Below are positions 3,237 to 55,560 of a stretch of DNA of 64,000 nucleotides, piece after piece (the stretch's first letter is position 1; each line of letters starts with the position of its first letter). The notes under the pieces are model-generated. The model had not been told where the DNA came from and did no database searches. It saw only the letters and a program-made list of their open reading frames with translations. This stretch comes from Phaeosaccion multiseriatum. Lineage: Eukaryota; Protista; Ochrophyta, other classes. Both the position numbers and the translations under genes were made by a program. The stretch lies in the NCBI GenBank assembly GCA_965112735.1, contig OZ218956.1, positions 1,488,001 through 1,552,000 of the forward strand, read 5' to 3'.

Positions 3237-6200
3237 ATGGGCTGTGGCCCTTCTCAAGACGCCGCCCCCAGCGGCAACAACAGTAGGGCAGCCAAATCGC
3301 TCTACGACCGAGAGAAGGAGGTTGTAGCGTCAAGGTCGAAGGACAAGTTGATGCACAACCTCGTCAACGAAGTGTTCACTGCAAATATTAGAGACAACTA
3401 TGAAATTGAAGACGAAGGACCCGCGCTGGGCACAGGCACTTTCGCCGTGGTGCGCAAAGCGGTAAAGAAGAGCACCAAGAGGGCCTATGCAGTCAAGATC
3501 TTTCGCCTCAAGAAGACGCTCGAGGCCACGGTGCTGGAGACCATCATGGCAGAGGTGAGGCTAAATTAGGGTCACCATTGCCGCTCACCTCGGCAGACAC
3601 AGCCCCCCCTCGGGCGTCCCATCTGACTGACGCACACTGCAACCTCTGCCACACCATCCACTATCATCCACTGCCATCCACTACCATCCACTGCCACCCA
3701 CCCACTACCTCCCCCCCACCCACTACCATCCCCTGCCATCCACCCCCCGACCCTTCCAGGTCAACATCATGAAGAAGCTGAATCACCCCAACATCATCCG
3801 CCTGCAGGAGGTGTATCAGGAGGACAACAAACTCTTCCTCGTCATGGACCTGGCCACGGGGGGTGATGTCTTCGGCCGATACGCCTCCAATAAGGCCTTC
3901 TTCGCCAAGGAGGCAAACGCCGCCTCCATCATGCTACAGGTAAGTGATGGTAGGTAGGTGGGTAGGTAGGTGCGTAGGTAGGGTAGGGTACGTATGTAGA
4001 TAGGTACTTGGCTATAAAGGTAGGTAGGTAGGTAAGAAGATGGAGGTAGGTAGATGGGTAGGCAGGTGTGTAGGTAGATAGGTGGGCAGGCGTGTAGATA
4101 GGTGGCTAGGTAGATACGTATATAGGTATGTAGGTAGAAAGGCAGGTAGGCAAAAGGTAGGTAAGTGGGTAGGTCGGGAGGGGGGAGGGGAGGGAAGAAG
4201 AAGAAAGAAAGGAATTGCCTCACAAGTCTCCTCCTCCTCCTCCTCCTCCTCCTCCTCGTCCTCCTCCCCCTCCTCCCCCTCCTCCTCCTCCTCCTCCTCC
4301 TCCTCCTCCTCCTCCTCCTCCTCCTCCTCCTCCTCCTCCTCCTCCTCCCCACCCCAACCTCGTTGCGCTGCATGCACCTGTGTGTGTGTGTGTGTGTGTG
4401 TGCGTGTAAAGGTGACCAAGGCCGTGCGCTACTGCCACTCCTATGGGGTGGTGCATAGAGACATCAAACTCGAGAATTTGCTCTATGAAGACGAGGGAGA
4501 GTACTCAGAGGTCGGGCTTGGGAGGACTTAGGAGGGAGGAGGGGAGGGAAAGGGAAAGGGGAGGAGAGGGATGAAGTGGACACACGTAGGGTTACGTATC
4601 ACCGAGGCATCCGCTCCACTCTCACTTACAACCAACTACTACCGCAACGACATACCCCAACCCAACGCCTACCTACTACCACAACAAACAGATCAAGCTA
4701 ATGGACTTTGGCCTGTCCACTCTGACGGATGCCGTGCATAGCAACAACCAAAACGCACAAGGAGGCACGGTGGACTACATGTCACCCGAGCAGATCAAGG
4801 GGAAAGGGGACAAGCCCTGCGACATGTGGGCTATCGGAATCCTGACGTATGTCATGCTAGCGGGCTACTTTCCCTTTAATGCTGCCACCAGCGATGGGGT
4901 CAAGCTCAAGATCAAGTAAGTCAGAGGGAGGGGGGAGGGAGGGAGGGAGGGGCAAGGAGGGGAGAGAGATGAAGCGAGCACGTGGAGGAGGAGAGGGGAG
5001 ACGCGCGGGCGTGCGTGTGTGTCACTTAGCCTTTGGCTTTGCTGTACCTGGGGCCAAGCGGTGCTGGTGGCGCTGCTCTTGTGTGTGTGTCCCTGTCTCT
5101 CTTCTCTCCCTCTCCTCTCTCTCTACATACAATAACAATGATATACATGCCTTTCTCTTTCTCTGCCTCCCTCACCTCTCTCCCTCCCCCTCTTTCTCTC
5201 CCTCTCTCTCTGTCTCTCCGTCCTCTCTCTCCTCTCTCTCTCCTGCTCCCTCTCTCTCTGCCTCTCTCTCTCCTGCTCCCTCCCTCCCTCCCTCCCACCC
5301 TGCCTGCCTGCCTCCCTGCGTCTGTCCCTCCCTCCCAGGTGGGGTGGCTACAGTATGCCCAAGGCAGACTTCGCACACGTCAGCGCCGAGGGCAAAGACT
5401 TCATCTCCAAGCTCCTCACCAAAGACGCTGACAAGCGCCTCACCGCCACAGAGGCCATGGACCACCCCTGGCTGAAGATGAGTCTCGACGCGGAGACCCA
5501 CGGGCCTGTCTCGGAAGGGACAATTTCACAGTTCAAGAAGTTTGGGGAGAAGACGGTAGGGAGGGGGAGGGGGAAGGGGAGGGAGGGGAGGGAAGCAGAG
5601 ATGGATGAAAGCAACTCTCGTGTGCGGATTGTGTGCATGTGTGTGTCCACGCCTCGCAATGTTGCTTGCCCTTCCATTTCCCCTCCTCACCTTTCCTTCC
5701 TCCTCCTCCTCCTCCTCCTCCGCCTCCTCCTCCTCCTCCTCCTCCTCCTCCTCCTCCTCCTCCTCCTCCTCCTCTCCTCCTCCTCCTCCTCCTCCTCCTC
5801 CCCCCTCCCTGCCCCCCCTGAACAGGGCATCTACCGGCTAGCCCTGGAGGTAATAGCCCACCACATGGACTCAGGCCGCCTCGCTCAGCTGTCCAAAGAA
5901 TTCCAGAAGTTCGATAAGGACGGCTCAGGACTCATTTCGGAGGATGAGTTTGTGGCGAGGTTGGTGGAGCATGGCACGGAGGAGGAGGAAGCCAAGGCCC
6001 TCTTTGCTAGCGCGGACGTCGACGGTACGGAAGGAGGAGGGGGGAGGGAGTGAAGGGGAGGGGAGGGGAGGGAAAGATGAGCTGACAGAGGAGGCCTGGG
6101 CATTGGTCACAAGGTGCAAGGAGTAGCGACTGCGCTGGGCGGAGTAGCCCGTGTTTCATGTGTGCGTGTGTGTTTGTGCGTGTGTGCGTGTGCGTGTGTG

Positions 6201-8323: not shown

Positions 8324-16660
<8,337 letters not shown>

Positions 16661-35668: not shown

Positions 35669-38600
35669 ATGCTCTCCCCCGTGAAGCAGAACAGCTTCGG
35701 GAGGTGGGCCCTCAGTCTGGTGCTGTGCCTCCTCGCAGCAACACCACCCGCAGCTCTCGCATGTCCACCGGGCCAGGAACCAGCACCAGCAGGCCTTTCC
35801 CGTAAGTTCCAAAGGGCGGGGCTGGCTGGCTGCTGCGTGGGGCGTGGTGCGGCCGTGATCCGCTGCGCGCCATCCAGTAGGCCTAGGTAGGCAGCAACTG
35901 CAGCCCCCCCAGGCCGGGCAATTTTCCAAAATAGGCCTAGGCCGCTAGGCGTGCACGGGGCCGACACGGCCGGCCGGGAGGGAGGCTACTAGGTAGCTTG
36001 CTTAGCTACGGCCGGGGGGTTGTAGCGAAGCTCTGAATGAGCGACTGGAGCTGCAGCCATGTGGAAGGCGAGGGTGAGGGTGTCTACACAACCTGCTTTT
36101 TTGCCTCATCTTCTCTCTTCCCACTTTCTCTTCCTCTCGTCACGCGCTCTTCAGCTTCTTGCACAAACTGCCCACTGGGTACATACAACAACGAAGAAGG
36201 TGCATCAGGTCAGTCCAAATGGTGTTGACTGATGTGTCGTGATATAAGGCCAACATATGTGGGGCATGGTGGTGCCGTGTGTTGTTACCCGCCGCCCACT
36301 CTCACTCTCGGACATCGATGCACTTCATCGCTCAAGTTGTTTTGCCACAGCCAACCTTCTTGCCTCCCCCTTCCTCCCCACCCTCTCTCTCACTCGCTTC
36401 GTCTGCTCCAGCCTGCGAGGGCTGCCAGTGTCAAGTCGGGATGGTATGCATCCCTTCGACGGGTGAATGTGGTGAGTGAGTGATGGCGCACGAATTCTGG
36501 AAGCTGTGTTCATTATCTAGCACCTTGCCTCTTCCAGCCACATGCGGGGAAGCAAGACACCCCACCCAGGCGGTTGATCTGTCCGTCGTTTTCGTTGTGC
36601 TTGCTTCACGTGCCTGAGCTTGCTCAAGAGCCGTGCATCCTTAGCCCTGAAGTCCCCCCCCCCCCCCGCCCTGGCTGCCCTTTTCCCTGGGCTGGACTCT
36701 GTCTCCGTACCTGATTTTCCGTCTGACTCTCCCTCCCCTCCCCCTTCTCTGACATCTCCTATCGCCCTGTTCTTCCTGACTTCCTCCACCCCATCGTCCT
36801 CCTCATCCTTCTCTCCGCCCATCATCGACTCTTCCTGCCTCTCGCCCTGCCTCGATAAGCAACCCCCATCCCGTGCTTTTCCTCCTCGGGCAAGAGCCTC
36901 ATCTCATCTCACCTGACTGCCAGCTAATCAGCACCCCTTCTTCCTTGCCTCACCTGGCCTGGCCTGGCCTGCCTGGCCTGCTGTTGTTCCGTGTGGCGAG
37001 TCCGACTTTCGCGGAATAGCCCTCGTCAGCCAGGCCAGCTCAATTGAAGTTGTATCCACCCGCCCACTAACGCGCCCTCGCACTGCTGCTCACGCCCCCC
37101 TTTCCCTGTGTGGCCTCCTCACTGCTTCTTCTTCTCTATGGTTATGCTACATCTTTCCTTGACCGCACTCTCCCTCCTCTTGCCTGCTGCATGAGAAGCC
37201 TCCTTCGCATCCGGCACTGGCATTTCAGAGCACATTTTCATCCCTCAGCCGGGCGTCACTCGCGACGAAGCGATGGATATATGTGCGGCCAATGGGGCCG
37301 CCCTCGTGTCCGTCAACGACCAGACCGAAGACGGGTACGTCAAGGGTCTCATCCCAGATGATACCAACAACGCCCATGTCTGGGTTAGCTTCGAGCGGGA
37401 AGCAAGCACTGCCAAGAGCAACACAGCATTCACATGGGCAGACGGCACGGCGACGGCGGAGAACACGATGGCGGGCGATAGATGGGGCTGGAAGACCAAC
37501 CAGCCGAACAGTAGGGGCAACGACCAGCTCTGTGGCTCGTATTACTTCGAAGACAGGTTCGAGCCCGGCTGGAGCGATATTCCCAGCAGCGACGACCCTG
37601 GCCCTGTGGCTGGCTTCATCTGCGAGCGAGGCATAGGTGCGTAAGGTAGTGGCCTGATGAGGGCTTGGTTGGAAGTGGCGGTACCACACTATTGCGCGCG
37701 CGTTGCTTAAGGGGGAAACGCCCTCTTCATCCTCTTCCACCTCGCTCCTCCTTCTTCATGTTGTAGGTTGTTCACGATCATCACCACCTCCTCCTAGTCC
37801 ACCATCTCTTGCTCTACAGCCCCCCCCCCCCCCCTCTTCCCCGCTTGAAGGGAAAGCGCCTTTTCCTCCTCATCCCCGCTCCTGCTCTTCCTCCACCTCC
37901 ACCACCACCTCCTCCTCCTCCTCCTCCTACTACTACTACTACTCCACCAACTCTTCCACCACCACATCCTCCTCCCCCGCCTCCTCCTCCAACAAGTATT
38001 CCACCCCCCTCTCTTCCCCTTCTGGTCTAACCTCTTAGTCTGCATCGTATTTCGGGCCCTTAGGCACTGATTTGAATTCACCCGCCCCCCAACACGCCCT
38101 TCCGCTGCTACTCGTGTCTTCCTCCTTTTGCTCGTGTCTTCCTCCTGCTGCCGTGCGGCCTGCTTCACTTGCGGCCCCTACTCCTCGAATGGTTGTGACA
38201 CACCATGGGTGGCTGTCACTGAGCAGTGGACTTCACCCAGAGCAATACCTACACCTCTTCGGCCTCGGAGTACTTCTACGTCCCTCAGCCGGGCGTCACT
38301 CGCGACCAAGCGACTGCCCGGTGTGAGCTGAATGGGGCCGCCCTCGTGTCCGTCAACGACCAGACCGAAGACGGGTACGTCAAGGGTCTCATCCCAGATG
38401 ATACCAACAACGCCCATGTCTTGGTTAGCTTCGAGCGGGAAGCAAGCACTGCCAAGAGCAACACAGCATTCACATGGGCAGACGGCACGGCGACGGCGGA
38501 GAACACGATGGCGGGCGATAGATGGGGCTGGAAGACCAACCAGCCGAACAGTAGGGGCAACGACCAGCTCTGTGGCTCGTACTACTTCGAAGACAGGTTC

Positions 38601-41600
38601 GAGCCCGGCTGGAGCGATGTTCCCTGCAGCGACTTCCCTGCAGTGGTTGGCTTCGTCTGCGAGCGAAGCAAAGGTGCGTGAGAAAATCTCAGTGTTCTGA
38701 AGAGGACTTGGTTGGACGTGGTGGTCACACACAATGCCCGCGTGCGGCTTCAGGGGGATACGCTTTCTTCATCCCCGCTCCTCCTCCTCCTCCTCCTCCT
38801 CCTCCTCCTCCTCCTCCTCCTCCTCCTCCTCCTCCTCCTCCTCCTCCTCCTCCTCCTCCTCCTCCTCCTCCTCCTCCTCCTCCTCCTCCTCCTCCTCCTC
38901 CTCCTCCTCCTCCTCCTCCTCCTCCTCCTCCTCCTCCTCCTCCTCCTCCTCCTCCTCCTCCTCCTCCTCCTCCTCCTCCTCCTCCTCCTCCTCCTCCTCC
39001 TCCTCCTCCTCCTCCTCCTCCTCCTCCTCCTCCTCCTCCTCCTCCTCCTCCTCCTCCTCCTCCTCCTCCTCCTCCTCCTCCTCCTCCTCCTCCTCCTCCT
39101 CCTCCTCCTCCTCCTCCTCCTCACTTACGCGCTGTCCGTAGTCGCGGAACATATGTGCTGGCCTTGTCGAGTAGCCTATGCCATGCCCTCCTCCTCCTTT
39201 GCCCCCTCCCTTCCCTCTCCCTTCGTATGCGATAGGTCAAAGTACCACCCCCCTTATCCTCCTCCTCCGGCTTCGACAGGGCTGTGTGCTTTGATTTATC
39301 GCGGGCACCGCCTGACACTGACGCCTAGTACTCCTTGTTTCACCCCCATCTGCTCTTTGCCTGTTCTCATATCTGGACCGCTGTGATGGTGTTGATTCTT
39401 TCCTCCCACGGGCTGCTCACACTGCCTTCCCTCTTCGAACGCATGTCCGTTCGCTCGGACGGCTCCGTGGATGACTGCCCTTGGGACCATTGTGCACTCT
39501 TCTTCTGCTTGCTCGCCTGTGCCAACAAGAGCCCGGCAAGTAAGTGCCCCTCTGAGAATGAGAGTTCCCCATGGACCCTTCCTTTTCTCCTCACCTTACT
39601 GAGCCACCCCTCCTGCTGCCCAAATGTCGAAATGCAGACAGCCCATCACCCCCAGCGCATGCGAGGTCTCCATCTTACATGTCGGTGCCCTCTCTCCCCC
39701 CACCCTGCCCTCGCTACTCATGTGCCCTAACTCTGACAGGCAGGTCGTGATTGAAGTGCTCCGGGCGGACACTATCCCTGGTGGGCCTGATGGTATCCTC
39801 AATCTGGCTGAAGTTGCTTGTTATGATGGCGGCAGCACGAAGATTCCGCTAGACGGCATCACCTTGAGCTCCCTCTACAGACCCTCCACGTTTCTTGCCA
39901 CTCGATGCACCGACGACGACGACACAACCTTCTGTCACTCCGACGAGAACCCGAACGAAGGAGAAGCCGGCAGCCTCACTCTCTACCTTTCTGGCGGACG
40001 TGACCAAGTTGTTACGTCCTGCGAGGTCACTAACCGTGGCAATTGCTGCAAGGACCGCATCAACGGCGCGAGCTTCAAGATCCTCGACGCGGACGGTACT
40101 ACTGAGCTCTACGCCAGCACTTTCCCCTCGTCCGAACAAGACACATACATTTTTGGTAAGTACACGTGGCTGCGTCATGCCCCCGCGGGGTGGGGGGGGG
40201 GGAGTAGAGGGCGATCAAAACTTGTCAGCTGCCATGGTTGAGCTGCTCTTCGATCATATCCCCACCGTAAATGTCGAGGCTGTGCGTACAAACTTACTCT
40301 TGCCTCAAGAAGTGATGTGCCCACAGCCCCTGACGTGGATGCCACCCGCCCCCAGCCAGACGCACCCCTCGCACTGCTGATGCCCCTCGCCCCCCCCACC
40401 TTCCCTTCGTCTGGACAGCGTGTGCCTCAGACTCAACCTCAGCCCTGTGCCCCTCCTGCTCTGTAATCGGCATGCCCATTGGACGATCAATCCCCGCTTG
40501 CCCGCAGCTTGCTACTCACTCCCCTTGCTTTGTGCTTCTTGTCTCCTTTGCCGCTCCTCGCCTTTTGCCCATCTCCTTCCCCTGTCCCTACCATGACTTA
40601 CAGACGTTTCCGCGAAGCCGATCTGCGAGGCGGGCGGTGGAGACTACGTCACCTCCTCCGACACGTGCACCTGCACTTCTGTGAACCCCCTCGATCAACT
40701 TGTGTGTGGGGGACAGGTCTGCCAGGTGGGTACGGTTGCGCCTTTCACCAGCGCTTCTCGCCAAGTCCTTGACTCGCCCCCATGCACTTCCCGCGCTCTT
40801 TGCCACTACAGTCACTCCCTCTCTCTCTACACCAACAGCCTGCTGCCTGCCACTCTTCCTGTACCCCCTGCATCTATCTGCGTGTAGAGTTGCTGTCCCC
40901 CTCCTTGAAGAGGGGCTAGGCGTTGTCAACGCCTTCACCGTACCAATCTCTCTTTCGAGGAAGTGGGCACATGACTGACTTTTGTTCCGCCGCTCCACTT
41001 AATCACGTTGCGCTGTGCTACGTCCCTTCTTCCCTGCCACAAACCGCTCGCCTTCCCTCATGCCACGGTCACGACTCACCAAAACATCCGCAACGATTGG
41101 TTGGCTGGGCCACACCGCGAACATGCCCCCTGTGCCCCCTGTCTACTGCTCGTCCTCACGGCGGCCTGTGGTTGGCTCCCTCGCCACCCTCCTTCGGCTG
41201 ACGCTGCTGCTCTTCACTGCCACGCTCTTCGCATTTTTTCCTGATGGCTGCATTGCTTCTTCGACGTCCCAGGGCACCACATTCAGGGTGAGTGTTTGCT
41301 ATCGCTCGTTCCATCCGCCGTTTGGCTCACACGCCAGGCAGGGGCTGAGAAGTGGTTCTGAGTGTGGCCTCTGCCGCTTGTTGATTGACGTTTGAGATTC
41401 GCCTTTCATTGTATTAGTGCTTTCTTTGCGACACAGCTTTAGCACCTACCTGGCCTTCGTGCCAGTCTAAGCCTGCGCCGTCGCTGTCTGCCAGGGTCGG
41501 GTCCCCCTTCTCCCCCCCCCTCCTTCGGCTGCTTTCATATTGATGCATCATATCGACTCTGCTCACTCCGCCCCCCTCTCTCGCTTGTCCCCACCTCACA

Positions 41601-44600
41601 ATGCTGCTCATCCTGAAGAACTGCGCTGTTGACTGCACGGAAAGCGGTAGCTGCGAGGTGAGTTCGTTTTGGCATAAGGGGGTAGTAGACGTTACACACG
41701 AGTTAGCGGGGACAGGGCGTTGGGGTGCCTCGCCACCTTCTCGCGCCCCCTCCTTCCCACCCCATTTTCTCTCATGCTTGCTCTGCTTTTCTATATTTAG
41801 TTGGTCTCCTCGCCATGTGTGTGGTAATCCTGTCTCGCGGCCTCCTTTCTGTTTGTCACCTTCCGCTTCTCGCTCGCTCCTGTGCGTTCCTCGCCTCCTT
41901 GCGAGCAAGCCTTGTACCCTCCGCCCTCTCCACATGTCTTTGCGTGCACCTGGGCCCTGACGAAGCGAGAATGGACAGGGTGGATGCTATTCTCCTGCTC
42001 ATCCTCTCGAAAGCGCTCTCCCAACACGTGATTGCTCTCTGTGACCTCGCCCCAACCGCCCTCTACAGAATGTTGTCCTGCAGGGAAGTTCCTACGCCAG
42101 TTGCGGAGCGACCAATGCTTGCAGTAACCTTGAGGTGTGTGTGTCACAAATGAGAGGGGGTGGGGGAAAGCCAAGCACGTCGCCGGCCGTGGTCACCCAC
42201 GAGGTTTTTCTATTAACCGCACCTCTGCTGTCTCCTCCGTCGCTCTCTGTCATGCCTCGCGCCGCTGTGAACAACAGACCGAGGAAGACGCATGCTGCCA
42301 GGGGTGGTAAGTGATCGCAGCAGAGTGATGTGCTTGCTGTGCGTGTCCTTGGCGGCGCGGGAGGGCCGTACGAGCTGTTGGCGAACCCCCCCCACACACG
42401 CGGTCGGGCCCTCGCATTTGTCTCGCTCTCTCCTCCTTTGTGCGCTCATGTTTGTTTGCGTTCTGCCGTGCCGCCTCCGTGTTTCCCGTGAATGCTCTAC
42501 CCGTGCGACTTCAATCATACCAAAAAGCCCTTCTGCTGGGGATACGCTCACGTGTGTAGGTAAGAACGGAGTGATACGATAACACGGGCGGCATGGGCTT
42601 TGAAAGCTGTTACACACTGAGCACCCCATAGTGGTCACTCGCTGCTCATTGCCTTGCTGACTGACAGCGTTCGCTAACTGGCTGTTTCTGTCCTTTTCCC
42701 TTCCACCCCTCGGCCTGGTGGTTTTGCTCTCCTCGTGCCACCCTCTTTGCTGCTCTGCTGGTGGGCGGCGCGGCTTCCTTCTCATCCCCGGACTGGTCGG
42801 CATGGTCGTGACGCTGCGTTGTTGCTTCCTGCAGACCCCGACGGAGATGGGATTCCGGACGATTTCGACAAGTGAGTGCACTGAGACATGGAGAGTATCG
42901 AAGCAGAGTGATGCCGTGCTTACGCGCCTTGCGTGTGTGTGTGTGCGCAATGCCCCCGCGTGTCGAAGAGGGTCCACACTGACTGCATTACTTCCTCCCC
43001 CCCTCGTGCTGACTCCTCGCAGCTGCCCGGACACAGCCAACTCCAAGCAAGACGACAGCAATAATGACGGAATAGGAGACGCGTGTGGTGAGAAAGGGCA
43101 GGGCTCGGGGAGAAGCACTCCATTCTGCACGTCCAAACTTAGACTATACATCTCCAGCGCGTTGCCCCTCGTCTTGCGCGCTGGCGTTCCTCCCCCTCCT
43201 CCGCCTCCCCCTCCCCCTCCTTCTCCTCCTCCTCCTCCTCCTCCTCCCTCCTCCTCCCTCCTCCTCCTCCTGTACCTCCGCCGCCTCCTCCGCCGCCGCC
43301 TCCTCCTCCTCCTCCTCCTCCTCCTCCTCCTCCTCCTCCTCCTCCTCCTCCTCCTCCTCCTCCTCCTCCTCCTCCTCCTCCTCCTCCTCCTCCTCCTCCT
43401 CCTCCTCCTCCTCCTCCTCCTCCTCCTCCTCCTCCTCCTCCTCCTCCTCCTCCTCCTCCTCCTCCTCCTCCTCCTCCTCCTCCTCCTCCTCCTCCTCCTC
43501 CTCCTCCTCCTCCTCCTCCTCCTCCTCCTCCTCCTCCTCCTCCTCCTCCTCCTCCTCCTCCTCCTCCTCCTCCTCCTCCTCCTCCTCCTCCTCCTCCTCC
43601 TCCTCCTCCTCCTCCTCCTCCTCCTCCTCCTCCTCCTCCTCCTCCTCCTCCTCCTCCTCCTCCTCCTCCTCCTCCTCCTCCTCCTCCTCCTCCTCCTCCT
43701 CCTCCTCCTCCTCCTCCTCCTCCTCCTCCTCCTCCTCCTCCTCCTCCTCCTCCTCCTCCTCCTCCTCCTCCTCCTCCTCCTCCTCCTCCTCCTCCTCCTC
43801 CTCCTCCTCCTCCTCGTGGGGCTCTGCCATTTATTGAGCACTGCAGTGTCTGTTGGCAAGCTGACTTTCCCACCTCGTTGCGTGTGGCACTCCATGATCT
43901 GATGGTGCCCTCTTTGCTGCTCTACTGGTGGGCGGGGTGGCTTGCTTCTCATCGCCGAACTTGTCATCATGGTCGTGTCGCGGGGATGTGTGCTTCCTTA
44001 TCACCCAGACATCGACGGAGACGGGATTGTGGACGCAGATGACAAGTGAGTGGACGCTGCAGGAGGGTGTAGCGTGTGTGTGTGCGCGCCAGTTTTTTTG
44101 CCCACGAGTGCGCCAACGTTTGATCGGTTTCAGCCAGGCGCAGTCATAGTAACATGGCCGTGCCCTGGTATCCGACCACTGACTGCCATGCATTGCCTCC
44201 TCCCCTTTGCCCTGTGCAGTTGCCCTGGGGTTGCAAACGCTGATCAACAAGACCTCGACGGAGACGGAGAAGGAGATGCTTGTGATGATGGTGAGGGATG
44301 GGTCTTAAGGCAGAGAAGTGGCGAAGGAAAAACCCTGTCATTGCTTTGTTGAGCACTGCTCTGCGTGATGGCAAGCTGACTTTCCCACCTCGTTGCGTGT
44401 GGCACTCCATGGTCTGATGGTGCCCTCTTTACTGCTCTACTGGTGGGCGGCGCGGTGTGCTTCTCATCCCCTAACTTGGCTTCATGCTCATGCTGCTGCC
44501 TGGGATGTGTGCTTCCTTTTCATCCAGACACCGACGGAGACGGGATTGCGAACGCAGACGACAAGTGAGTGCACTGAGATATGGAGAGAATCGAAGCGGA

Positions 44601-47600
44601 GTGATGCCGTGCTGACGTGCTTTGCGTGTGTGTGCGTGCGCAACGCCGCCGTGTGTCGAAGAGGGTCTACACTGACTTTAGTACTTCCTCCCCCCCTCGT
44701 GCTGACTCCTCGCAGCTGCCCGCTCACTGCCAACTCCGACCAAGACGACGGCAATGATGACGGAGTAGGAGACGCGTGTGGTGAGAAAGGGCAGGGCTCG
44801 GGGAGAAGACTCCACACACTTAGATTCTATGCAAGTCCTTCGAACAACATGGGGCCATGTGGTATGACTGTGGTCTGACTGTGGTCTGACTATCGTCGCC
44901 TGACTGTAGTAAGGTCCTGATCCTCCCATCTGCTCCTTGCTTTCTTCCTGCCATCTGGACTCCACACCCTCCCTGGTTACATGCTCGGGGCCTCTCTTTG
45001 CTTGTGCTCTGCTCTGCTCTCCCTGTTGTTTTGTTGCCCACATTGTACGCCAGACCTGAGCCTTCTATGCACGGAGTCATACATTCCGAACCCCCCTTTC
45101 AGGGGAACATGCACGTGTGCCTCTACTTCTGATCAAGTGGTCTGTACCGGCTTGTTTTGCCAGGTGCGTGCGCAGGCAGGGCATCGTCTCACCAGCGATG
45201 GATGGGCCCCGTGCGCCTCCTTGCTCGTTGACCCATTGAGTCCTCGACCCCGACTCTTTGAATCCTCTGCTGATGCGTGGTTCTGCTTGTGCTCTGTGAG
45301 TCTTGGCATCTGTATGCGAGTAAACGAACCCTTCTGACACGCACCCTCTTGCCTCTTATCTTTGCCTCTGCCTTGCCCTTGCTTGGCACCTGCGGCGTCT
45401 GTCTACACTGTGCGGCCGGCCCCGTCCTCATGTTGTTGGGTATCGTGCATGGGGGTCGTCGGACATGGTCGCTCCTTCCCCACTCGTACCCGCGCGTCTC
45501 CTCCTCGCCTCAACAGAGGGCGACATTTGTGGTGAGGGAGCGAATCCTTTCCTTTTCATCTTGCTTGACTTGTGGCAACTCACCCTCGTTCTTGCGCCAT
45601 TTTGATCTAAGCCTGTGCGTACGGACCCACGCTCATCCCAACACCCCAACACCCCGCTGTTGCCCTTTGTCATGCTTTGCTCATGTCTGTCATGACATGC
45701 GGCTGCTCCCTTCCGCCCCTGGCTGCGGCCCACCTCGCCTCTGCTCAACCGTCATGAAGAATTGCGCCGTGACCTGTACGGATTATCGCAGCTGCCAAGT
45801 GAGTGAGGAAGTCTCTTGTAACAGCTACTGCCCCCTCATCAGTCAGCCAGCCCAAGAACTCCACTCTCGCTGCCCGGCCGTCCGATTGGATTTTAGACTT
45901 TGTGTCATACCCTCCTGTGCCACAGGTGGCTGCAGGGAGGGCCCATACGTTGAGCCTTTCTCCTCTCCTGACCTCCCCCCTGTGCCCCTCGCTCTGCTGG
46001 CCTCCTGCCCTCTTTTCTCTTCAACACACACCCTGCTCCACACAGTATGCCTTTTTCCAAGACACTTCGACCGCCACCTGCTCAGGGGAGGACTCCTGTC
46101 ACGTGAGTTCTCAGTCCGCTCTCGCGGCCTGCTTGGCCGATTGTGTATCTTACTTGTGTCCTACCACTGGCGGTACACACCCCAGGCCTCCCCCCTCTCC
46201 TGACCTCCCCCCTGTGCCCCTCGCTCTGCTGGTCTCCTGCCCTCTTTTCTCATCAACACACACCCTGCTCCACACAGGAGGCCCTTTTCCAAGACACTTC
46301 GACCGCCACCTGCTCAGGGGAGGACTCCTGTTACGTGAGTTCTCAGTCCGCTCTCGTAGCCTGCTTGGCCGATTGTGTATCTTGTGTCGTGCCACTGGCT
46401 GGCGGCACACACCCCAGGCCTCCCCCCTCTCCTGACCTCCCCCCTGTGCCCCTCGCTCTGCTGGTCTCCTGCCCTCTTTTCTCATCAACACACACCCTGC
46501 TCCACACAGTATGCCATTTTCCGAGACACTTCGACCGCCACCTGCTCAGGGAAGAGCTCCTGTTACGTGAGTTCTCAGTCCGCTCTCGTAGCCTGCTTGG
46601 CCGATTGTGTATCTTGTGTCGTGCCACTGGCTGGCGGCACACACCCCAGGCCTCCCCCCTCTCCTGACCTCCCCCCTGTGCCCCTCGCTCTGCTGGTCTC
46701 CTGCCCTCTTTTCTCTTCAACACACACCCTGCTCCACACAGTATGCCGAGTTTTATGACACTTCGACCGCAACCTGCTCAGGGGAGAGCTCCTGTTTGGT
46801 GAGTTCTCAGTCCGCTCTCGCTGCCTGCTTGGCCGATTGTGTATCTTACTTGCGTCGTACCACTGGCGGCACACACCCCAGGCCTCCCCCCTCTCTGACC
46901 TCCCCCCTGTGCCCCTCTGCTGACCTCGCACACCCGCCCTGTTTTCTCATCAACGCCCACCCTGCTCCCCTCGAACAAGTCTGCGGACTTGCTTTGAAGG
47001 CAATTCGATCGCAACTTGCGCCGAACCTTACTCCTGTTTTGTGCTTTATTCGTCTCAGCCCACGTTCGCCCTCCTAACCTGGCTATTTCTGTGGCTTACT
47101 TGTTCTGTCGCACCGCCGCTGAACGGCCCATGCCTCAAGCCTTGCTCCTCTCCTGACCTCCCCTCTGTGCAACTGGCCTCTTGCTGACTCACATCGTCAA
47201 CCCCCACACAGGATGCCGACCTTTATTCCAATTCGGCCGCCATCTGCACCGCTGAAACGGCCTGCAGTAATCTCGAGGTGTGTGTGTAAAGGGAAGTGGG
47301 CCAGTCCATGCAAGGGGAAGTACAAGATACACGCTTGTACGTCTCAGATGATGTGATATGTGATACGATGACTGACCATGCATCCGCGCCTGTCTCCCAC
47401 CTTTCCTTGCATCACTCTCGGCTGTGGCTAATAGACAAGTGAGCGTGGTTCTTCATGCTGCCTGGCCACGGTGGATGGAGCTTGGTAAGTGGGTAGTCGC
47501 AGGCAGAGTGCCTTTGAGGAGTGCATTTACTCTCCTGCAGGGGCTGAGTGTTGGCCAAGAAGGCAAGGAGCGCCAATCTCACCCCTCGCGCTTACACCCC

Positions 47601-47685
47601 CCCCCCTTTCCCTTTTGAACTCTCTCCTTTGCCTTCTTGAACCCCGCCCGTGTGCATCCCTGCAACATTTTTAGCCCAACCACGA

Positions 47686-47726
<41 letters not shown>

Positions 47727-50700
47727 ACAGGAGTCAGAGTGTGCGAAGGTAAGCACGAGTGAGATGGTGAGATGGTGAGGACGAGTTGTGCACCTTCATC
47801 TCGTCGCTCCTCGATACGTGCTGCTTGCTTTTCATGGCCGCACAGCCAGTGAGCTCTTCGGGTTCTTTTGCCGTGGCTGCCCTACCCATTGCCCTCCACA
47901 GTCTGACAATCGTTTCTCTCATGCGCTGGCCCTGTTTGTGCTCTGCTGGGCCGCTCCCCACCCCCTCCTGCCATGGCGTGCGTCTCGTGCGGCGGTGGTG
48001 GCCCTCCTGATTGCAGACACCGACGATGACGGCATTCCGAACGATCGCGACAAGTGAGTGATTTAATTCCTTTTATGCGTTTCGGACCGACTTGACAGGA
48101 GTGGATCGCGTTGCTTGTGCGTGTGGGTGTGCTGCGTGGCGTGGGTGTGCCCCGCCAGCAGCGCATTTCTCTGTGGCCTGCGTTAGTAGCCCTGCTTTTC
48201 ATCACTGTCCGCCGTGCGTGCGTGCGTGCGTGCGTACGTGCCCCCCCCAGCGTCTCTCTGTGTCTAGCTAGTCTTTGGTTTTGGCCTAGTCAATACCCCC
48301 CAATCGGAATGCAAGTGCGAATGCAACGAATGTGTGTGCGCGCGCGACGCCCCCGCGTGTCGAAGGTCCACACTGACTGCATTACTTCCTCCCCCCCTCG
48401 TGCTGACTCCTCGCAGCTGCCCGTTCGCATACAACCCCAAGCAAGACGACATCGACGAAGACAGAGAAGAGAAGGAGACGCGTGTGGTGAGAAAGGGCAG
48501 GGCTCGGGGAGAAGCACTCCACACACTTAGATTCTATGCAAGTCCTTCGAACAACATGGGGCCATGTGGTCTGACTGTGGTCTGACTGTTGTCTGACTAT
48601 CGTCGCCTGACTGTAGTAAGGTCCTGATCCTCCCATCTGCTCCTTGCTTCCTTCCTGCCATCTGGACTCCACACCCTCCCTGTTTACATGCTCGGGGCCT
48701 CTCTTTGCTTGTGCTCTGCTCTGCTCTCCCTGTTGTTTTGTTGCCCACTTGGCGCGCCAGACCTGAGCTTTCTATGCACGGAGTCATACATTCCTTTCAT
48801 CGCGGACGACGGCGCTTTGAGGGGAACATGCACGTGTGCCTCTACTTCTGATCAAGTGGTCTGTACCGGCTTGTTTTGCCAGGTGCGTGCGCAGGCAGGG
48901 CATCGTCTCAACAGCGATGGATGGGTCCCGTGCGCTGTTTGCTCGTTGATTCATTGGGTCCACGACCGCAAATCTTTGAATCCTCTGCTGATGCGTGGTT
49001 CTGCTTGTGCTCTGTGAGTCTTGGCATCTGTATGTGAGTAAACGAACCCTTCTGACACGCACCTTCTTGCCTCTTGACGTGGCTGGTGCCTCTGCCTTGC
49101 CCTTGCTTGGCATCTGCGGCGTCTGTCTACACTGTGCGGCCGGCCCCGTCCTCACGTTGTTGGGTATCGCGCATGGGGGTCGTCGGACATGGTCCTTCCC
49201 CACTCGTACCCGCGCGTCTCCTCCTCGCCTCAACAGTCGAAGACATTTAAGGTGAGGAAGCGAGTGCTGGCATGATCATCTTGCTTGATTTGTGGCAACT
49301 CACCCTCGTTCTTGCGCCATTTGATCTAAGCCTGTGTGTACGGACCCACCCTCATCCCAACACCCTACTAACACCCCGCTGCTTCCCTTCGTCCTGCTTT
49401 GCTAATCTCTGTGTGTCGTGGCATGCGGCTGCTCCCTTCCGCCCCTGGCTGGCTGCGGCCCACCTCGCCTCTGCTCAACCGTCATGAAGAATTGCGCCGT
49501 GACCTGTACGGATTATCGCAGCTGCCAAGTGAGTGAGGAAGTCTCTTGTAACAGCTACTGCCCCCTCATCAGTCAGCCCAAGAACTCCACTCTCGCTGCC
49601 CGGCCGTCCGATTGGATTTTAGACTTTGTGTCGTACCCTCCTGTGGCACAGGTGCAGGGCCCACACGTTGAGCCTTTCTCCTCTCGTGACCTCCCCCCTG
49701 TGCCCCTCGCTCTGCTGGCCTCCTGGGCCTGCCCTCTTTTCTCATCAACACCTGCTTGGCCGATTGTGTATCTTACTTGTGTCGTGCCTCTGGCGGCACA
49801 CACCCCAGGCCTCCCCCCTCTCCTGACCTCCCCCCTGTGCCCCTCGCTCTGCTGGTCTCCTGCCCTCTTTTCTCATCAACACACACCCTGCTCCACACAG
49901 TATGCCTTTTTCCAAGACACTTCGACCGCCACCTGCTCAGGGGAGGACTCCTGTGAAGTGAGATCTCAGTCCGCTCTCGCGGCCTGCTTGGCCGATTGTG
50001 TAGACTATCTTACTTGTGCCGTGCCACTGGCGGCACACACCCCAGGCCTCCCCCCTCTCCTGACCTCCCCCCTGTGCCCCTCGCTCTGCTGGTCTCCTGC
50101 CCTCTTTTCTCTTCAACACACACCCTGCTCCACACAGGAGGCCATTTTCGAAGGCACTTCGACCGCCATCTGCTCAGGGCCGTACTCCTGTGAAGTGAGT
50201 TCTCAGTTCGCTCTCGCTACCTGTTTGGCCGATTGTGTATCTTACTTGTGCCGTGCCACTGGCGGCACACACCCCAGGCCTCCCCCCTCTCCTGACCTCC
50301 CCCCTGTGCCCCTCGCTCTGCTGGTCTCCTGCCCTCTTTTCTCTTCAACACACACCCTGCTCCACACAGTTTGCGGACTTTTATGACACTTCGACCGCAA
50401 CCTGCTCAGCGGAGGAGTCCTGTTTGGTGAGTTCTCAGTCCGCTTTCGCCACCTGCTTGGCCAATTGTGTATCTTGTGTCGTGCCACTGGCTGGCGGCAC
50501 ACACCACACCAGCCAGGCCTCCCCCCTCTCCTGACCTCCCCCCTGTGTTCCTCGTTCTGCTGGTCTCCTGCCCTCTTTTCTCATCAACACACACCCTGCC
50601 TGCTCCACACAGGAGGCCATTTTCGAAGGCACTTCGACCGCCACCTGCTCAGCCGGCAGCTCCTGTTACGTGAGTTCTCAGTCCGCTCTCGTAGCCTGCT

Positions 50701-51803
50701 TGGCCGATTGTGTATCTTGTGTCGTGCCACTGGCGGCACACACCCCAGGCCTCCCCCCTCTCCTGACCTCCCCCCTGTGCCCCCCGCTCTGCTGGTCTCC
50801 TGCCCTCTTTTATCATCAACACACACCCTGCCTGTTCCACACAGGATGCGGTCTTTTATGACACTTCGACCGCAACCTGCTCAGCGGAGGAGTCCTGTGA
50901 AGTGAGTTCTCAGTCCGCTCTCGCTACCTGCTTGGGCTTGGCCAATTGCGTATCTTACTTGCGTCGTACCACTGGCGGCACACACGCCAGGCCTCCCCCC
51001 CTCTCTGACCTCCCCCCTGTGCCCCTCTGCTGACCTCGCACACCCGCCCTCCTTTCTCTTCAACGCCCACCCTGCTCCCCTTGAACAAGTCTGCGGACTT
51101 GCTTTGAAGGCAATTCGATCGTAACTTGCCTTGCGCCGAACCTTACTCCTGTTTTGTGCTTTATTCGTCTCAGCCCACGTTCGCCCTCCTAACCTGGCTA
51201 TATCTGTGGCTTACTTCTGTCGCACCGCCGCTGAACGGCCTATGCCTCAAGCCTTGCTCCTCTCCTGACCTCCCTTCTGTGCCCCTGGCCTCTTGCTGAC
51301 TCACATCGTCAACCCCCACACAGTCTACCGACTTTTATGGCAATTCGGCCGCCATCTGCTCCGCTGAAAGGGCCTGCAGATATCTCCAGGTGTGTGTGTA
51401 AAGGGAAGTGGGCCAGTCCATGCAAGGGGAAGTCCAAGAGACACGGTTGTAGCTACGCCCCAGATGACGTGATATGTGATCCGATGACTGACCATCCATC
51501 CGCGCCTGTCTCCCGCCTTTCCTTGTATCACTCTCGGCTGTGGCCAATAGACAATAGGGAATGGTGCTTCATGCTGCCTGGCCACGGTGGAAGGAGCTTG
51601 GTAAGTGGGTAGTCGCAGGCAGAGTGCCTTTGAGGAGTGCATTTACTCTCCTGCAGGGGCTGGGGGTTGGCCAAGAAGGCAAGGAGCGCCAATCCCACAC
51701 CCTCGCGCTTACACCCCCCCCCCCTTTCCCTTTTGAACTCTCTCCTTTGCCTTCTTGAACCCCGCCCGTGTGCATCCCTGCAACATTTTTAGCCCAGGCA
51801 CGA

Positions 51804-51841
<38 letters not shown>

Positions 51842-54800
51842 ACAGGAGTCAGAGTGTGCGAAGGTAAGCACGAGTGAGATGGTGAGATGGTGAGGACGAG
51901 TTGTGCACCTTCATCTCGTCGCTCCTCGATACGTGCTGCTTGCTTTTCATGGCCGCACAGCCAGTGAGCTCTTCGGATTCTTTTACCGTGGCTGCCCTAC
52001 TCATTGCCCTCCACAGTCTGATAATCGTTTCTCTCATGCGCTGGCCCTGTTTGTGCTCTGCTGGGCCGCTCCCCACCCCCTCCTGCCATGGCGTGCGTCT
52101 CGTGTGTCGGTGGTGGCCCTCCTGATTGCAGACACCGACGATGACGGCATTCCGAACGATCGCGACAAGTGAGTGATTTCATTCATTCTATGCATTTCGG
52201 ACCGACTTGACAGGAGTGGATCGCGTTGCTTGTGCGTGTGGGTGTGCTGCGTGGCCTGGGTGTGCCTCCCCAGCAGCGCATTTCTCTGTGGCCTGCGTTA
52301 GAAGCCCTGCTTTCAGGATTGTCCGCCGTGCGTGCGTGCGTGCGTGCGTGTGCCCCCCCCAGCGCCTCTCTGTGTCTAGCTAGTCTTTGGTTTTGGCCTC
52401 GTCAACACCCTCCTCTCTGCTCCACTTGACAAATTCAAGTGCGACTGCAGCAACTGTGTGTGCGTGCGCTACGCCCCCGCGTGTCGAAGAGGGTCTACAC
52501 TGACTGCATTACTTCCTCCCCCCCTCATGCTGACTCCTCGCAGCTGCCCGTTCACAGCCAACGAAAACCAAGAGGACATCGACGAAGACGGAGTAGGAGA
52601 CGCGTGTGGTGAGTTCTTTCCCTCCTCCTCCTCCTCCTCCTCCTCCTCCTCCTCCTCCTCCTCCTCCTCCTCCTCCTCCTCCTCCTCCTCCTCCTCCTCC
52701 TCCTCCTCCTCCTCCTCCTCCTCCTCCTCCTCCTCCTCCTCCTCCTCCTCCTCCTCCTCCTCCTCCTCCTCCTCCTCCTCCTCCTCCTCCTCCTCCTCCT
52801 CCTCCTCCTCCTCCTCCTCCTCCTCCTCCTCCTCCTCCTCCTCCTCCTCCTCCTCCTCCTCCTCCTCCTCCTCCTCCTCCTCCTCCTCCTCCTCCTCCTC
52901 CTCCTCCTCCTCCTCCTCCTCCTCCTCCTCCTCCTCCTCCTCCTCCTCCTCCTCCTCCTCCTCCTCCTCCTCCTCCTCCTCCTCCTCCTCCTCCTCCTCC
53001 TCCTCCTCCTCCTCCTCCTCCTCCTCCTCCTCCTCCTCCTCCTCCTCCTCCTCCTCCTCCTCCTCCTCCTCCTCCTCCTCCTCCTCCTCCTCCTCCTCCT
53101 CCTCCTCCTCCTCCTCCTCCTCCTCCTCCTCCTCCTCCTCCTCCTCCTCCTCCTCCTCCTCCTCCTCCTCCTCCTCCTCCTCCTCCTCCTCCTCCTCCTC
53201 CTCCTCCTCCTCCTCCTCCTCCTCCTCCTCCTCCTCCTCTGCCTGCATCCTCCTCCCCTCCTCTTCCGCTTCGCTCCTCCTCCTCGTATGACTCTGCTGA
53301 CGTCTTCATGCTCCCTCTCCCTCCCCCCCCCCCTCTCTCTCAATTTGTCTCTCTGTCTCTGAGTAGAGGACTATCCTATAGCGCTCAACCTGGTCGAGGG
53401 CGATTACGTCGCAACAGTGAAGGGAAGCCTTGACACTGCGCCGCCCTCGGATAATGTGAAGTGTGGTGATGCTGGGGCCGGCGTCAACCAACCTACCGTC
53501 ACTTACCGATTCACTGCTCCCTCCCTCGGCGGCACTCTCACTGCTGATACCTGTAGTGATGTCAACACCGACTTCGACACGCAAATCGCTGTCTTCAGTG
53601 TATCATCCTCAGATGGCAGCCTCTCGTGCGTGTCCGACGCGGCCGAGAGTGATAACAGTGGGGGTACTAGTACTACAGCCCCGTGTTCTGTTGGGATGAA
53701 AGCGTCCAACGTGCATGTCATGGGGGGCTTGGAGTATGCTGTTCGAGTATACCCCGCCGCCGCCACTGGTACTACGCGAAGATGGCGAAGATTGCAGTCT
53801 GGTGGAAGCGGTTTCACGCTCAGTGTAGTAGTCAGAGGTGAGAGAGTGAGCGAGCTTGATGCAGTGTATGGGACGGAGGTCGGGACCAGGGAGTGATCTA
53901 GCCATGGCAATTGGAGGGCACTGGACTGGCCTGGCTTGCTGCCGCCCCCCTATTGTTTACAGGGCTCATCTACCATGCGTCGCTCCCTCCCCTTGCTTGT
54001 CCTCGGCCCCATCGTGAAGAGCCCCGCTGCCACTGCCCAGAGCTATTCGAATATTGCTTGTGTGGAAGGAAGCTGCTGGACTGACTCACCGTCGTACGGG
54101 GGCTGTGTCCTTCTGTTTGTGTTTTTTTGTGTACTATGAGAACGCGCTCTTTCTCCATCTCTGTCTCTCTCTTATCTCTCTGTCCCTCCCTACCTCCCTC
54201 CCTCTCTTTCCCTCTGTGTGCATGTGTCGATTCCTGTGTCTGGCTGCACTTCGTGCGGCGCTTCTCAGGCTCTTCGGTGGAGGTGCAAGGGGACCCCATG
54301 GTCTTCGGTTTCCAGCACCAAGTCTTCCTCTTCAAGGGAGCTGACGACGCCTGGTACGCCGCCTTGACCGAGAAGCACCTGCAGTGGAACTGGCGACTGG
54401 GGGTCTTCCCTTCCTGCGAGAACGGCGCCATGCCGGTGAGTGTCTGCGCAGCAAATCGAGGCGGCCAGCCAGTTGCACACAGCCCAAGAGCTGAAAGGCT
54501 TGCTGTATATATATATAGGCTGACTCCACTTGGGACAGTTGGGGGCGGCGTGGAATTGCACTACTGAGTGGAATCACTCTCTCTTGCCGGCCGGGAGCTC
54601 CACCATTTCCGTCATCTGTGCAGCTTCCCGTTGCCAAAGCTAATACCGACCTCCCCACTGTGGCCTGACTGCCGACCTCCTCTTGTGACTGCTTTGATGT
54701 AACCCCCCCCCCGCCACCTACTCCAACACCTGTCCCTCGTACGGACACGCACGCACCCGCAGACGTACGTCACGGCCTCGTCCTTCACCTTCCCTCCCCT

Positions 54801-55560
54801 CGACGGGGTCGATATGCCCGAGTCCAGGGTGCTGGTGGAGGTGATTGATCAGGCCAAGTACAACCCTGCCTACATTGAAGGGGAGGAGCTCTCGCCGCGA
54901 GCCGAGCAGATTCTGGGCTACGGCTCCCTGGCAGTCCACATCGAGGACAAGAGGATCGTCAAGCCGGGGCTGTACCGCATGGCCAACGGCGGCACCGTGA
55001 TGGCGTTCAACGCGTACGGCCCCTGCCAGGTGAAGCGCGACCTCCACATGATGGAGGAGCTGAACGAGGCGGAGAGGGTCAAGACCTCTCGCCGTCTCTC
55101 GGAGATGGCAGTGGATGACGACCTGGCGGCGCTGCTGGCCGTGGAGTCCCGCCTGCACAAGGCGGAGGACAGGGCCTTGTGCGAGGAGTGGATCGCCGAC
55201 AAGCGAATCACTCGTAACCTTTTCACCGAGCCAGGGTCATGGGCCAGTGTCTACATCTTTACGGACACGTATTCGTTCCAGGTGGACTATCGGCAAGAGC
55301 TCGAGCGCTGCTACGCTCACGTGATTGACGTTGGATTCATCCACAAGCCCTCCGACGTGGGTGTGGAGACGTGGAGCGGGGTCATGGGTGAGACGCAGCG
55401 GCTGAGACTTGACAGCGAAGGCAAGCCCATCCTGAGGGACAGGGACCTCATCCTGTCTTCCTCCAAGGACGAGGACTACGTCGTGGACGGACCATGGGGA
55501 ACAGACTTTGTGGCCCGTTTGGACAGCGCATGGGAGCCGGAGTCGCCATCCTCCGAGTGA
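35669..55560 (+). CDS. Large secreted modular lectin/adhesin, ~1650-1700 aa, about 47 exons: SP - Cys-rich (GCC2/3-like) - CTL - CTL - F-type lectin - solenoid module A - 3xTSP3 - module B - TSP3 - module C - TSP3 - PPC-like - GDP(H)/VWD-like; one exon (48417-48486) carries a +5 nt frameshift
   Basis: Signal peptide MLSPVKQNSFGRWALSLVLCLLAATPPAALA. Exon phases chain consistently through GT-AG sites (e.g. 35669-35801, 36155-36208, 36412-36471, 37229-37636, 38227-38673, 39530-39539, 39740-40155, 40604-40725 ... 53367-53837, 54269-54435, 54763-55560). No C-terminal TM helix was seen. Confidence 0.8.
37229..37636 (+). CDS. Exon: C-type lectin domain 1
   Basis: A...C...GAALVSV, VWVS, FTWADG, W...QPN, C, WSD, FICE. 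Phase 1-1 exon of 408 nt. Confidence 0.85.
   Translation, partial: STFSSLSRASLATKRWIYVRPMGPPSCPSTTRPKTGTSRVSSQMIPTTPMSGLASSGKQALPRATQHSHGQTARRRRRTRWRAIDGAGRPTSRTVGATTSSVARITSKTGSSPAGAIFPAATTLALWLASSASEA
38227..38673 (+). CDS. Exon: C-type lectin domain 2
   Basis: Paralogue of domain 1 with WSDVPCS...FVCE. Phase 1-1 exon of 447 nt. Confidence 0.85.
38778..39122. repeat. Pure (CCT)n tract, ~340 bp, intronic
   Basis: Directly visible. Confidence 0.95.
39740..40155 (+). CDS. Exon: F-type lectin (fucolectin / F5-F8 type C)-like domain
   Basis: LNLAEV...SS.Y...A....D....TFCHS...EVTNRGNCCKDRINGA. Confidence 0.75.
42835..44780 (+). CDS. Three thrombospondin type-3 (Ca-binding) repeats, each split over two exons
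   Basis: DPDGDGIPDDFDN/CPDTANSKQDDSNNDGIGDAC; DIDGDGIVDADDN/CPGVANADQQDLDGDGEGDACDD; DTDGDGIANADDN/CPLTANSDQDDGNDDGVGDAC. Confidence 0.88.
43298..43815. repeat. Pure (CCT)n tract, ~515 bp, intronic
   Basis: Directly visible. Confidence 0.95.
45960..47277 (+). repeat. Exon-intron tandem array B: ~232-bp units with 57-nt phase 0-0 exons at 46046, 46278, 46510 and 46742; pseudo-exon 46980-47040; cap exon 47212-47277
   Basis: Each unit has cacacag|57 nt|gtgagt, encoding xAxFxDTSTATCSGxxSCx. Confidence 0.92.
49680..51389 (+). repeat. Exon-intron tandem array C: 57-nt exons at 49901, 50138, 50370, 50613 and 50845; exon-less unit at ~49750; pseudo-exon 51090-51155; cap exon 51324-51389
   Basis: Same unit structure as array B. 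Confidence 0.92.
52620..53238. repeat. Pure (CCT)n tract, ~620 bp, intronic
   Basis: Directly visible. Confidence 0.95.

Follow-up and report, generated by a model that had tools for sequence, protein, structure and literature searches.

Between positions 35669 and 55560 of a 64,000-nucleotide stretch of the genome of the ochrophyte alga Phaeosaccion multiseriatum (C7:1488001-1552000, hereafter the window), exons for two kinds of lectin domain, for cysteine-rich repeats, and for a C-terminal domain beginning with G-D-P follow one another on the forward strand. This arrangement raised the question of whether the exons belong to one gene, and what the product of such a gene might do. The genome comprised 67.1 Mb in 22 contigs, with a GC content of ~58%. 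On balance, we consider it probable, with some reserve, that the region is a single gene, intact or nearly so, encoding a secreted glycan-binding mosaic of ~1,670 amino acids (aa), which would serve in adhesion or recognition and be held in the extracellular matrix by its tail. In order, the exons encoded a signal peptide, a short Cys-rich piece, two C-type lectin domains (CTL1 and CTL2), one F-type-lectin-like domain (F-lectin), three Cys-rich rod modules (A to C) with thrombospondin type 3 (TSP3)-like linkers, a PPC-like exon, and a tail with a VWD fold.

For gene modeling, a codon and intron model was trained on obvious large exons and used in a dynamic-programming exon finder started at the ATG at 35669. 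Small spurious exons were replaced by hand where a donor homologous to that of a sister module gave a simpler in-frame junction; the automatic exons at 35777, 35949, 36042, 40911, 51965, 54022, and 55628 were dropped, since the simpler junctions with homologous donors stayed in frame. The final model contained 47 exons on the + strand, starting with the ATG at 35669 and ending with the stop codon at 55558-55560. Its coding sequence of 5,013 nt encoded 1,670 aa including 99 Cys, with zero internal stops and with GT-AG boundaries at all junctions. Introns ranged from 143 to 921 bp (median 268 bp). The + strand was strongly C/T-rich from ~36 to 54 kb of the window, and its C+T content was 66% in introns versus 48% in exons. 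The spliced protein was used for the phase check only, and domain searches were run exon by exon.

Exon 1 (35669-35801, +; phase 0 to 1) contained the start codon and, as read from the sequence, a signal peptide with a hydrophobic core and A-x-A before the first Cys. It was followed by a pair of short exons rich in Cys (36155-36208 and 36412-36471, +), with spacing of the C-x2-C...G-x-Y type, each being too short for a family scan. The C-terminus of the protein was hydrophilic and carried no hydrophobic tail or membrane anchor. The initial annotation, made from the sequence alone, had described about 47 exons and a secreted protein of about 1.7k aa, and the model agreed with it in these respects. 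It had also stated that phase was kept with one exception; this did not hold, as two frame breaks were found, one at the junction of CTL2 and F-lectin and the other in the TSP3 exon at 48417.

The first break bears on whether more than one gene is present at the locus. A small secreted CTL-CTL protein, terminating at a stop shortly after the donor at 38673, might be followed by a gene with the F-lectin, solenoid, and VWD parts, or the division might lie at the TSP3 exon of the second break. At the end of the CTL2 exon (38673) the phase is 1, and the F-lectin exon at 39740 requires phase 2 (phase 0 with the AG located 3 nt further downstream). Joined directly, the two are out of frame, and read-through of the CTL2 donor (38673) reaches a TGA after two codons, as two separate genes would predict. 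A proposed 10-nt microexon (39530-39539, +), preceded by AAG and followed by GTAAGT, restores the frame; the model without it ran into a stop at aa 370. An identical 10-nt exon was found in five close paralogous loci, where the introns were conserved too, so that this alone was weak proof. The divergent paralogue on contig C13 (C13:795980-805853; CTL, F-lectin, at least nine cassettes, and PPC) was more informative. Its lectin exons were 41-42% identical to those of the window and its introns could not be aligned with the window introns, yet it had a matching phase-1 donor after the CTL exon, a phase-2 acceptor before the F-lectin exon, and between them a 10-nt exon (C13:805176-805185) bounded by TAG and GTGAGT and ending in GGCAA. 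The comparison gives good support to a real microexon, and the lectin head and the remainder would therefore be parts of one gene. A separate downstream gene would, moreover, be left without a start codon and signal peptide, as the ATG at 39624 was followed by non-signal sequence. At seven loci in the genome, CTL preceded F-lectin on the same strand, and the pyrimidine skew was uniform across all 46 introns of the model. We thus regard two or more genes as very unlikely, and to the extent that sequence can tell, a single gene from 35669 to 55560 is strongly supported, if not proven.

The second break lay in the TSP3-like repeat between modules B and C (48017-48486, +), recognized by motif and by comparison of exon lengths. 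The exon from 48417 measured 70 nt to the homologous donor, compared with 65 nt in six sister copies (four others in the window and both copies at a paralogous locus on contig C5). The extra 5 nt corresponded to a tandem duplication of AGAGA (~48463-48472). A donor GTGTGG at 48482, which precedes the usual one by exactly 5 nt, gives a 65-nt exon and keeps the frame, and the repeat then loses its terminal G-D-A-C. This donor was weaker than the local consensus. If instead the homologous donor at 48487 (GTGAGA/GTGAGT type) is used, the window may carry a decaying or truncated allele, whose product would end near aa 945, after module B, and lack module C, the PPC-like exon, and the VWD tail, or whose message would be degraded. 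Against such an allele, all 16 downstream exons were open and in phase. The tail was compared with that of the C5 paralogue (C5:1136718-1165683; two CTL, three F-lectin, cassettes, PPC, and tail), which was 80-94% identical to the window in DNA and colinear with it. Tail exons were 93-97% identical, versus 77-80% for introns and 67% for the 3' flank, and the last exon showed 33 synonymous codon differences, compared with 13 non-synonymous ones. As judged from these differences, which like all codon counts given here were tallied without a codon model and are crude, the tail exon appears to be under purifying selection. The duplication itself may also be an assembly error. A truncating allele was accordingly judged quite unlikely, and an intact or nearly intact gene, read through with the alternative donor, was preferred; the 5-bp duplication may nevertheless be a recent frameshift rescued by donor choice, an allele that truncates the product, or a mistake of the assembly.

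The lectin head contained two CTL exons and one F-lectin exon, in agreement with the initial annotation. Both CTL exons exceeded the cut-off of 22.6 bits for Pfam Lectin_C (PF00059): CTL1 (37229-37636, +) with 35.3 bits (E 2.1e-8; match 37273-37644) and CTL2 (38227-38673, +) with 39.1 bits (E 1.4e-9; match 38226-38681). CTL2 had QPN at the EPN/QPD position and gave weak PDB matches to DEC-205 and selectins, in which QPN was aligned to the EPN of DEC-205. WSD was found in place of WND in both window copies. The divergent CTL on C13 (C13:804300-807300) carried the canonical QPN...WND pair.

The third lectin exon (39740-40155, +) was assigned to the F-type-lectin-like domains (FTP/galactose-binding-like). 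Taken singly it was below the Pfam gathering cut-offs, scoring 17.8 bits against 27.8 for PF22633 (E 0.005) and also failing that of PF00754. A profile built from this exon and 12 paralogous copies gave a sole significant match in the PDB, the tandem F-type lectin FBP32 (3cqo; E 6.8e-5), both domains of which aligned with the profile at the NR-x-D-CC-x-x-R-L/I-N-G block. The ESM features of the exon pointed to F5/8 type C and NedA-like clusters (scores 0.93-0.96). Its AlphaFold2 (AF2) model was poor (pLDDT 59.8 with 13 alignment rows), and the Foldseek matches of that model were meaningless. The fucose site of F-type lectins consists of a His and an R-x-D-x4-R motif. The His and both Arg were kept in the window exon, where Asp was replaced by Asn (R-G-N-C-C-K-D-R); Asp was present in most paralogues.

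The three rod modules had a common layout with homologous flanking exons, consisting of a head, a 15-nt microexon, an exon with NCAV, a variable number of cassettes, a cap, a CC exon, and a CP exon. Module A (40604-42559, +; microexon 41273-41287) contained zero cassettes, and the cassette profile matched only its cap at 42069. Module B (45054-47748, +; microexon 45517-45531) contained four 57-nt cassettes (46046, 46278, 46510, and 46742), and module C (48761-51863, +; microexon 49237-49251) five (49901, 50138, 50370, 50613, and 50845). A module recurring three times with zero, four, and five cassettes had been proposed in the initial annotation, and the exon model, the TRF output, and the cassette profile agreed on these numbers. 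In the window, the profile detected exactly the four and five cassettes plus the three caps. A degenerate cassette pattern had seven matches in the window, versus none in 100 shuffles. TRF detected two arrays of 232-bp units, one of 4.3 copies at 45962-46968 and one of 5.6 copies at 49750-51078, in which each unit corresponded to one cassette exon and one intron. Modules B and C formed a tandem duplication of ~4.1 kb and were 90-91% identical, introns included. Coding microsatellites, (GAC)13 at ~47685-47727 and (GAC)12 at ~51803-51841, encoded poly-Asp in the last (CP) exons of modules B and C, respectively.

Each cassette was a phase-0 exon encoding 19 aa. The nine cassettes and three caps gave the consensus xAxFxDTSTATCSGxxSCx, with C-x5-C spacing and with an invariant T-S-T-A-T-C core in the cassettes. 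Because variable and invariant positions alternate and because of the C-x5-C pair, we infer that the rods may form a three-sided beta-solenoid with ~19 residues per coil, one face bearing a ladder of invariant Thr and another being variable. The ACR repeats of frustulins were considered as a source of the cassette and rejected: the ACR domain is defined by the hexapeptides CQGDCD and VPGCSG (PMC4712521), neither of which was present. The cassette motif was found in none of 116 relatives of the tail. Neither the degenerate cassette DNA pattern nor F-lectin peptide patterns gave a match in metagenome scans. The 19-residue Cys repeat of the rods is undescribed.

Five TSP3-like repeats, each split by an intron, were found between and after the rod modules. 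Three potential Ca-binding repeats, each consisting of one exon of 37 nt and one of 65 or 71 nt, lay at 42835-44780 (+; Pfam TSP_3 E 0.014-0.35), the repeat with the AGAGA duplication was the fourth, and a fifth, of two exons, lay at 52132-52608 (+; E 0.0021). The motif D-x-D-G-D-G-I-x-D-x-x-D-N-C-P...N..Q.D...D-G-x-G-D-A-C was present in four of the five, the pair at 48017/48417 being damaged. Single exons, scored separately, reached 11-18 bits for TSP_3 (PF02412), below the cut-off of 25. The exon at 53367-53837 (+) had ESM features close (0.95) to clusters with PF04151 (PPC), a beta-sandwich domain, and had four paralogous copies in the genome. PF04151 itself gave no match, either for the window exon (E up to 10) or for the C13 paralogue (E up to 1); PDB sequence matches of the exon to designed Kelch repeats were spurious. 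For both elements the initial annotation was therefore borne out in part: the TSP3 motif was visible between modules, as expected of the spacers it had described, with single exons below the Pfam threshold, and the PPC-like label found a lead in ESM features and no Pfam match.

The tail was encoded by the last two exons, 54269-54435 (+), which begins with G-D-P-M, and 54763-55560 (+), which ends with the stop codon and was assigned from genome matches, a profile search, and the fold of a homologue. As the former exon aligned with the start of the family consensus, G-D-P-x-I-x-G-L-x-G-Q-x-F-K-F, the two appear to form one domain. The last exon had at least 62 matches in the genome; apparent in-frame stops in tail paralogues turned out to be natural stop codons. 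A profile of 14 genomic copies, searched against 1.84 billion representative proteins, retrieved 107 clusters (best E 2e-41), in which the domain was almost always at the extreme C-terminus. All relatives that had a name came from diatoms, namely Thalassionema, Stephanopyxis, and Odontella, the Odontella protein being labeled "VWFD domain-containing"; the others were environmental sequences. Among 53 long relatives, the domain followed passengers including CBM_4_9, M11/M12/S8 peptidases, PAN, ice-binding, chitin-binding, and ricin lectin domains, and none contained Lectin_C, TSP_3, or F5/8. This result and the blank word and metagenome searches were in line with the initial annotation, in which the domain combination was not recognized as a described family. 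The word search, run on 5.8 billion proteins with the tail, F-lectin, and CTL2 exons, sees similar-length proteins only, so that its blank result is weak. No match was obtained for four exons in NCBIfam, or for the tail profile in PDB sequences. A further paralogue (C7:1459800-1462000), ~26 kb upstream of the window, comprised a signal peptide plus a pair of cadherin-like (Cadherin_5/Big_9) domains joined directly to the D-P of the tail, and the tail thus seems to accept unrelated passengers.

The fold was predicted on a homologue, P0014, which matched the window-family profile with E 3.9e-32 and was 27-38% identical to the window exons. Its AF2 model (72-row alignment) had a pLDDT of 88.2 and a pTM of 0.86, with an extensive helical insertion near residues 150-210. 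Foldseek listed MUC2 and RGMB as top matches, with weak E-values. In an exhaustive VIA search of 48,161 PDB representatives, the top 19 matches were all VWD domains (Z 8.3-11.7; 126-159 aligned residues), including those of VWF, MUC5B, MUC2, FCGBP, MUC5AC, RGMB, vitellogenin, and Cypridina luciferase, and the next match had Z 3.9. Structural neighbors of the model in the ESM Atlas were an "Imm upregulated 3" cluster, Root_cap, ITI_HC_C, VWD, and RGM. In the motif, G was found in 42 of 51, D in 49 of 51, and P in 50 of 52 rows with a residue in the respective column. The GDP(H) domain of the initial annotation is accordingly real and, in the homologue model, has a VWD fold; the bracketed His is another matter, as G-D-P was followed by L, I, V, T, or M (M in the window) and never by His. 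One tail relative had a weak RGM_C match at the Asp-Pro (E 0.001).

At least 10 loci in the genome recombine these parts. The order CTL, F-lectin, cassettes, PPC was repeated at C5 and at the divergent C13 locus. A locus at C3:5090182-5106380 contained two CTL, one F-lectin, and at least 45 cassettes at ~240-bp spacing, which would make a very long rod. CTL and F-lectin heads were present at C5:214-222 kb, C5:496-509 kb, and C8:923-927 kb, both C5 loci having cassette matches; F-lectin, cassettes and/or PPC occurred with the tail at C14:738-748 kb, C2:5805-5809 kb, and C3:5213-5231 kb. The gene is therefore one member of a shuffled, expanded family and not singular.

The binding parts of the gene differed from the tail in their pattern of change. 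The lectin exons (37229-40155) were 88-92% identical to those of paralogues, whereas the neighboring intron was 96% identical in the C5 paralogue; non-synonymous and synonymous codon differences in these exons were in ratios of 20-34 : 4-10. Cassette exons had a mean identity of 80%, compared with 89% for 170 nt of intron upstream. Codon differences among cassettes were 207 non-synonymous versus 52 synonymous and were concentrated at codons 1, 3, 5, 15, 16, and 19. The data fit a conserved anchoring tail combined with apparently fast-evolving binding parts. They also raise the possibility that the protein serves recognition of non-self or of a partner (defence, symbiont, or gamete) rather than structural adhesion, with lectin heads and one solenoid face kept diverse by selection. 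Lectin and cassette exons that outpace their flanking introns with an excess of non-synonymous changes, cassette variation confined largely to six codons around a fixed core, and variable cassette numbers, from 0, 4, and 5 in the modules of the window to at least 45 in the C3 paralogue, are all expected under such selection. However, the counts are crude, and gene conversion that homogenizes introns could mimic the pattern. Recognition in place of structural adhesion was therefore judged rather unlikely, if the most credible of the alternatives, and the mosaic that may serve either adhesion or recognition was retained as the preferred reading.

How the preferred protein would work can be outlined as follows. 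The lectin head would bind glycans, and the rods would act as disulfide-stapled beta-solenoid spacers setting its reach. Unequal crossing-over of the 232-bp exon-intron units would alter rod length. The tail would fix the protein in the extracellular matrix, either through VWD-type multimerization, as in mucins, or by cleaving itself at Asp-Pro and coupling the passenger by an ester bond to a polysaccharide, as in inter-alpha-inhibitor (ITI) heavy chains. The latter idea is suggested by the C-terminal position of the domain, the conserved D-P at its start, and the structural neighborhood of ITI_HC_C. An adhesive, cell-wall, or defence function is plausible for such a protein, as read from its predicted domains. 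A bolder version, in which the family would be a diversifying recognition system with fast-evolving lectin heads, cassette-varied solenoid stalks, and a tail that cuts itself at Asp-Pro and anchors the protein covalently in wall or mucilage, seems unlikely. To our knowledge, Asp-Pro cleavage with polysaccharide coupling has so far been known from animal ITI heavy chains.

Several observations weigh against a single intact gene for a matrix-bound, glycan-binding protein. The donor at 48482 and the microexons of 10 and 15 nt are predictions from sequence, and use of the homologous donor at 48487 would end the protein at aa 945. The sugar-binding motifs are non-canonical, with QPN and WSD in the CTL domains and R-G-N for R-G-D in the window F-lectin. 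The PPC assignment, based on ESM features alone, is only a lead. As to the tail, the VWD fold was modeled on P0014 and not on the window protein, Pfam VWD (PF00094) matched neither the window exons nor P0014, the His of GDPH is absent, and the model superposed on ITI_HC_C with a TM of only 0.45-0.49.

Lectin domains of the C- and F-types, for which animals are the best-known source, would occur together at this locus in a stramenopile alga. It also shows how exon-sized cassettes and 10- and 15-nt microexons may build extracellular proteins of variable length. The abundance of the tail in this genome, its C-terminal position, and its conserved Asp-Pro point to a general, testable way in which varied secreted proteins may be fixed to polysaccharides of the algal matrix. 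The rod repeat and this combination of domains were found nowhere else by the searches run, and both may be new. Follow-up would be most rewarding for the rod repeat and for the chemistry proposed for the tail.

Three intronic microsatellites of (CTC)n/(TCC)n/(CCT)n type, perfect or near-perfect and 345-665 bp long, were located at 38778-39122, 43188-43815, and 52621-53285. Their coding strand was always pyrimidine-rich, and the one after CTL2 varied greatly in length among paralogues. Elsewhere in the window, two unrelated genes were present, one represented by the kinase end and EF-hands of a calcium-dependent protein kinase (CDPK)-like gene (5355-6053, +) and the other by part of an M1 aminopeptidase (DUF3458_C; 10890-11810, -).

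Among known systems, the best solved relatives of the head were FBP32, DEC-205, and selectins, which have tandem lectin domains as in the window protein. The similarity is very distant, Ca- and sugar-binding motifs are modified in the window copies, and the rods and VWD tail are absent from those proteins. The linkers have the type 3 motif in common with thrombospondin and COMP, but occur one to three repeats at a time, split by introns, and without the thrombospondin C-terminal domain.

With ITI_HC_C (PF06668), the tail shares its C-terminal position, a length of 240-320 aa, and proximity in the ESM Atlas. ITI heavy chains lose C-terminal pro-domains, 239 and 244 aa long, on ester linkage to chondroitin sulfate (PMC7170535). 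Their passengers are unrelated to those found here, and the tail is known here from sequence and model alone. The nearest ESM Atlas clusters were the brown-algal "Imm upregulated 3" (TM 0.61/0.67) and plant Root_cap/LEA (0.49), both being automatic names reached by structure comparison only; for the "Imm upregulated 3" family, the published description is limited to developmental regulation (PMC4421812). VWF, gel-forming mucins, FCGBP, and RGM share the VWD fold, and the Asp-Pro at the start of the domain is at the position of the GDPH autocleavage site of Pfam RGM_C. The tail differs from these in having no Pfam VWD match, no His, and no TIL/C8 modules after it, and in its helical insertion.

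A further parallel in arrangement is with diatom proteins. Lachnit and colleagues reportedly described, in 2019, diatom adhesive proteins with a GDPH domain, Ac629 and related proteins of Amphora. Diatom GDPH-domain proteins have been described as secreted, modular, adhesive, and diatom-specific (PMC7335047; bioRxiv 10.1101/2023.03.06.531300). The diatom GDPH/VWD proteins, i.e., those of Amphora adhesive trails and the vWD+GDPH proteins of Seminavis, compared here by description, resemble the window protein in placing a C-terminal domain behind variable extracellular passengers. In contrast to them, the window motif has no His, and the host genome is intron-rich and contained no match to the silicon transporter PF03842 in a six-frame search of the whole genome. 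These two features speak against a diatom host, even though several of its genes have their nearest named relatives in diatoms. By its predicted tail, the gene is nevertheless tied to a known kind of protein, secreted and ending in a GDP/VWD-like domain, of which the named examples are all from diatoms.

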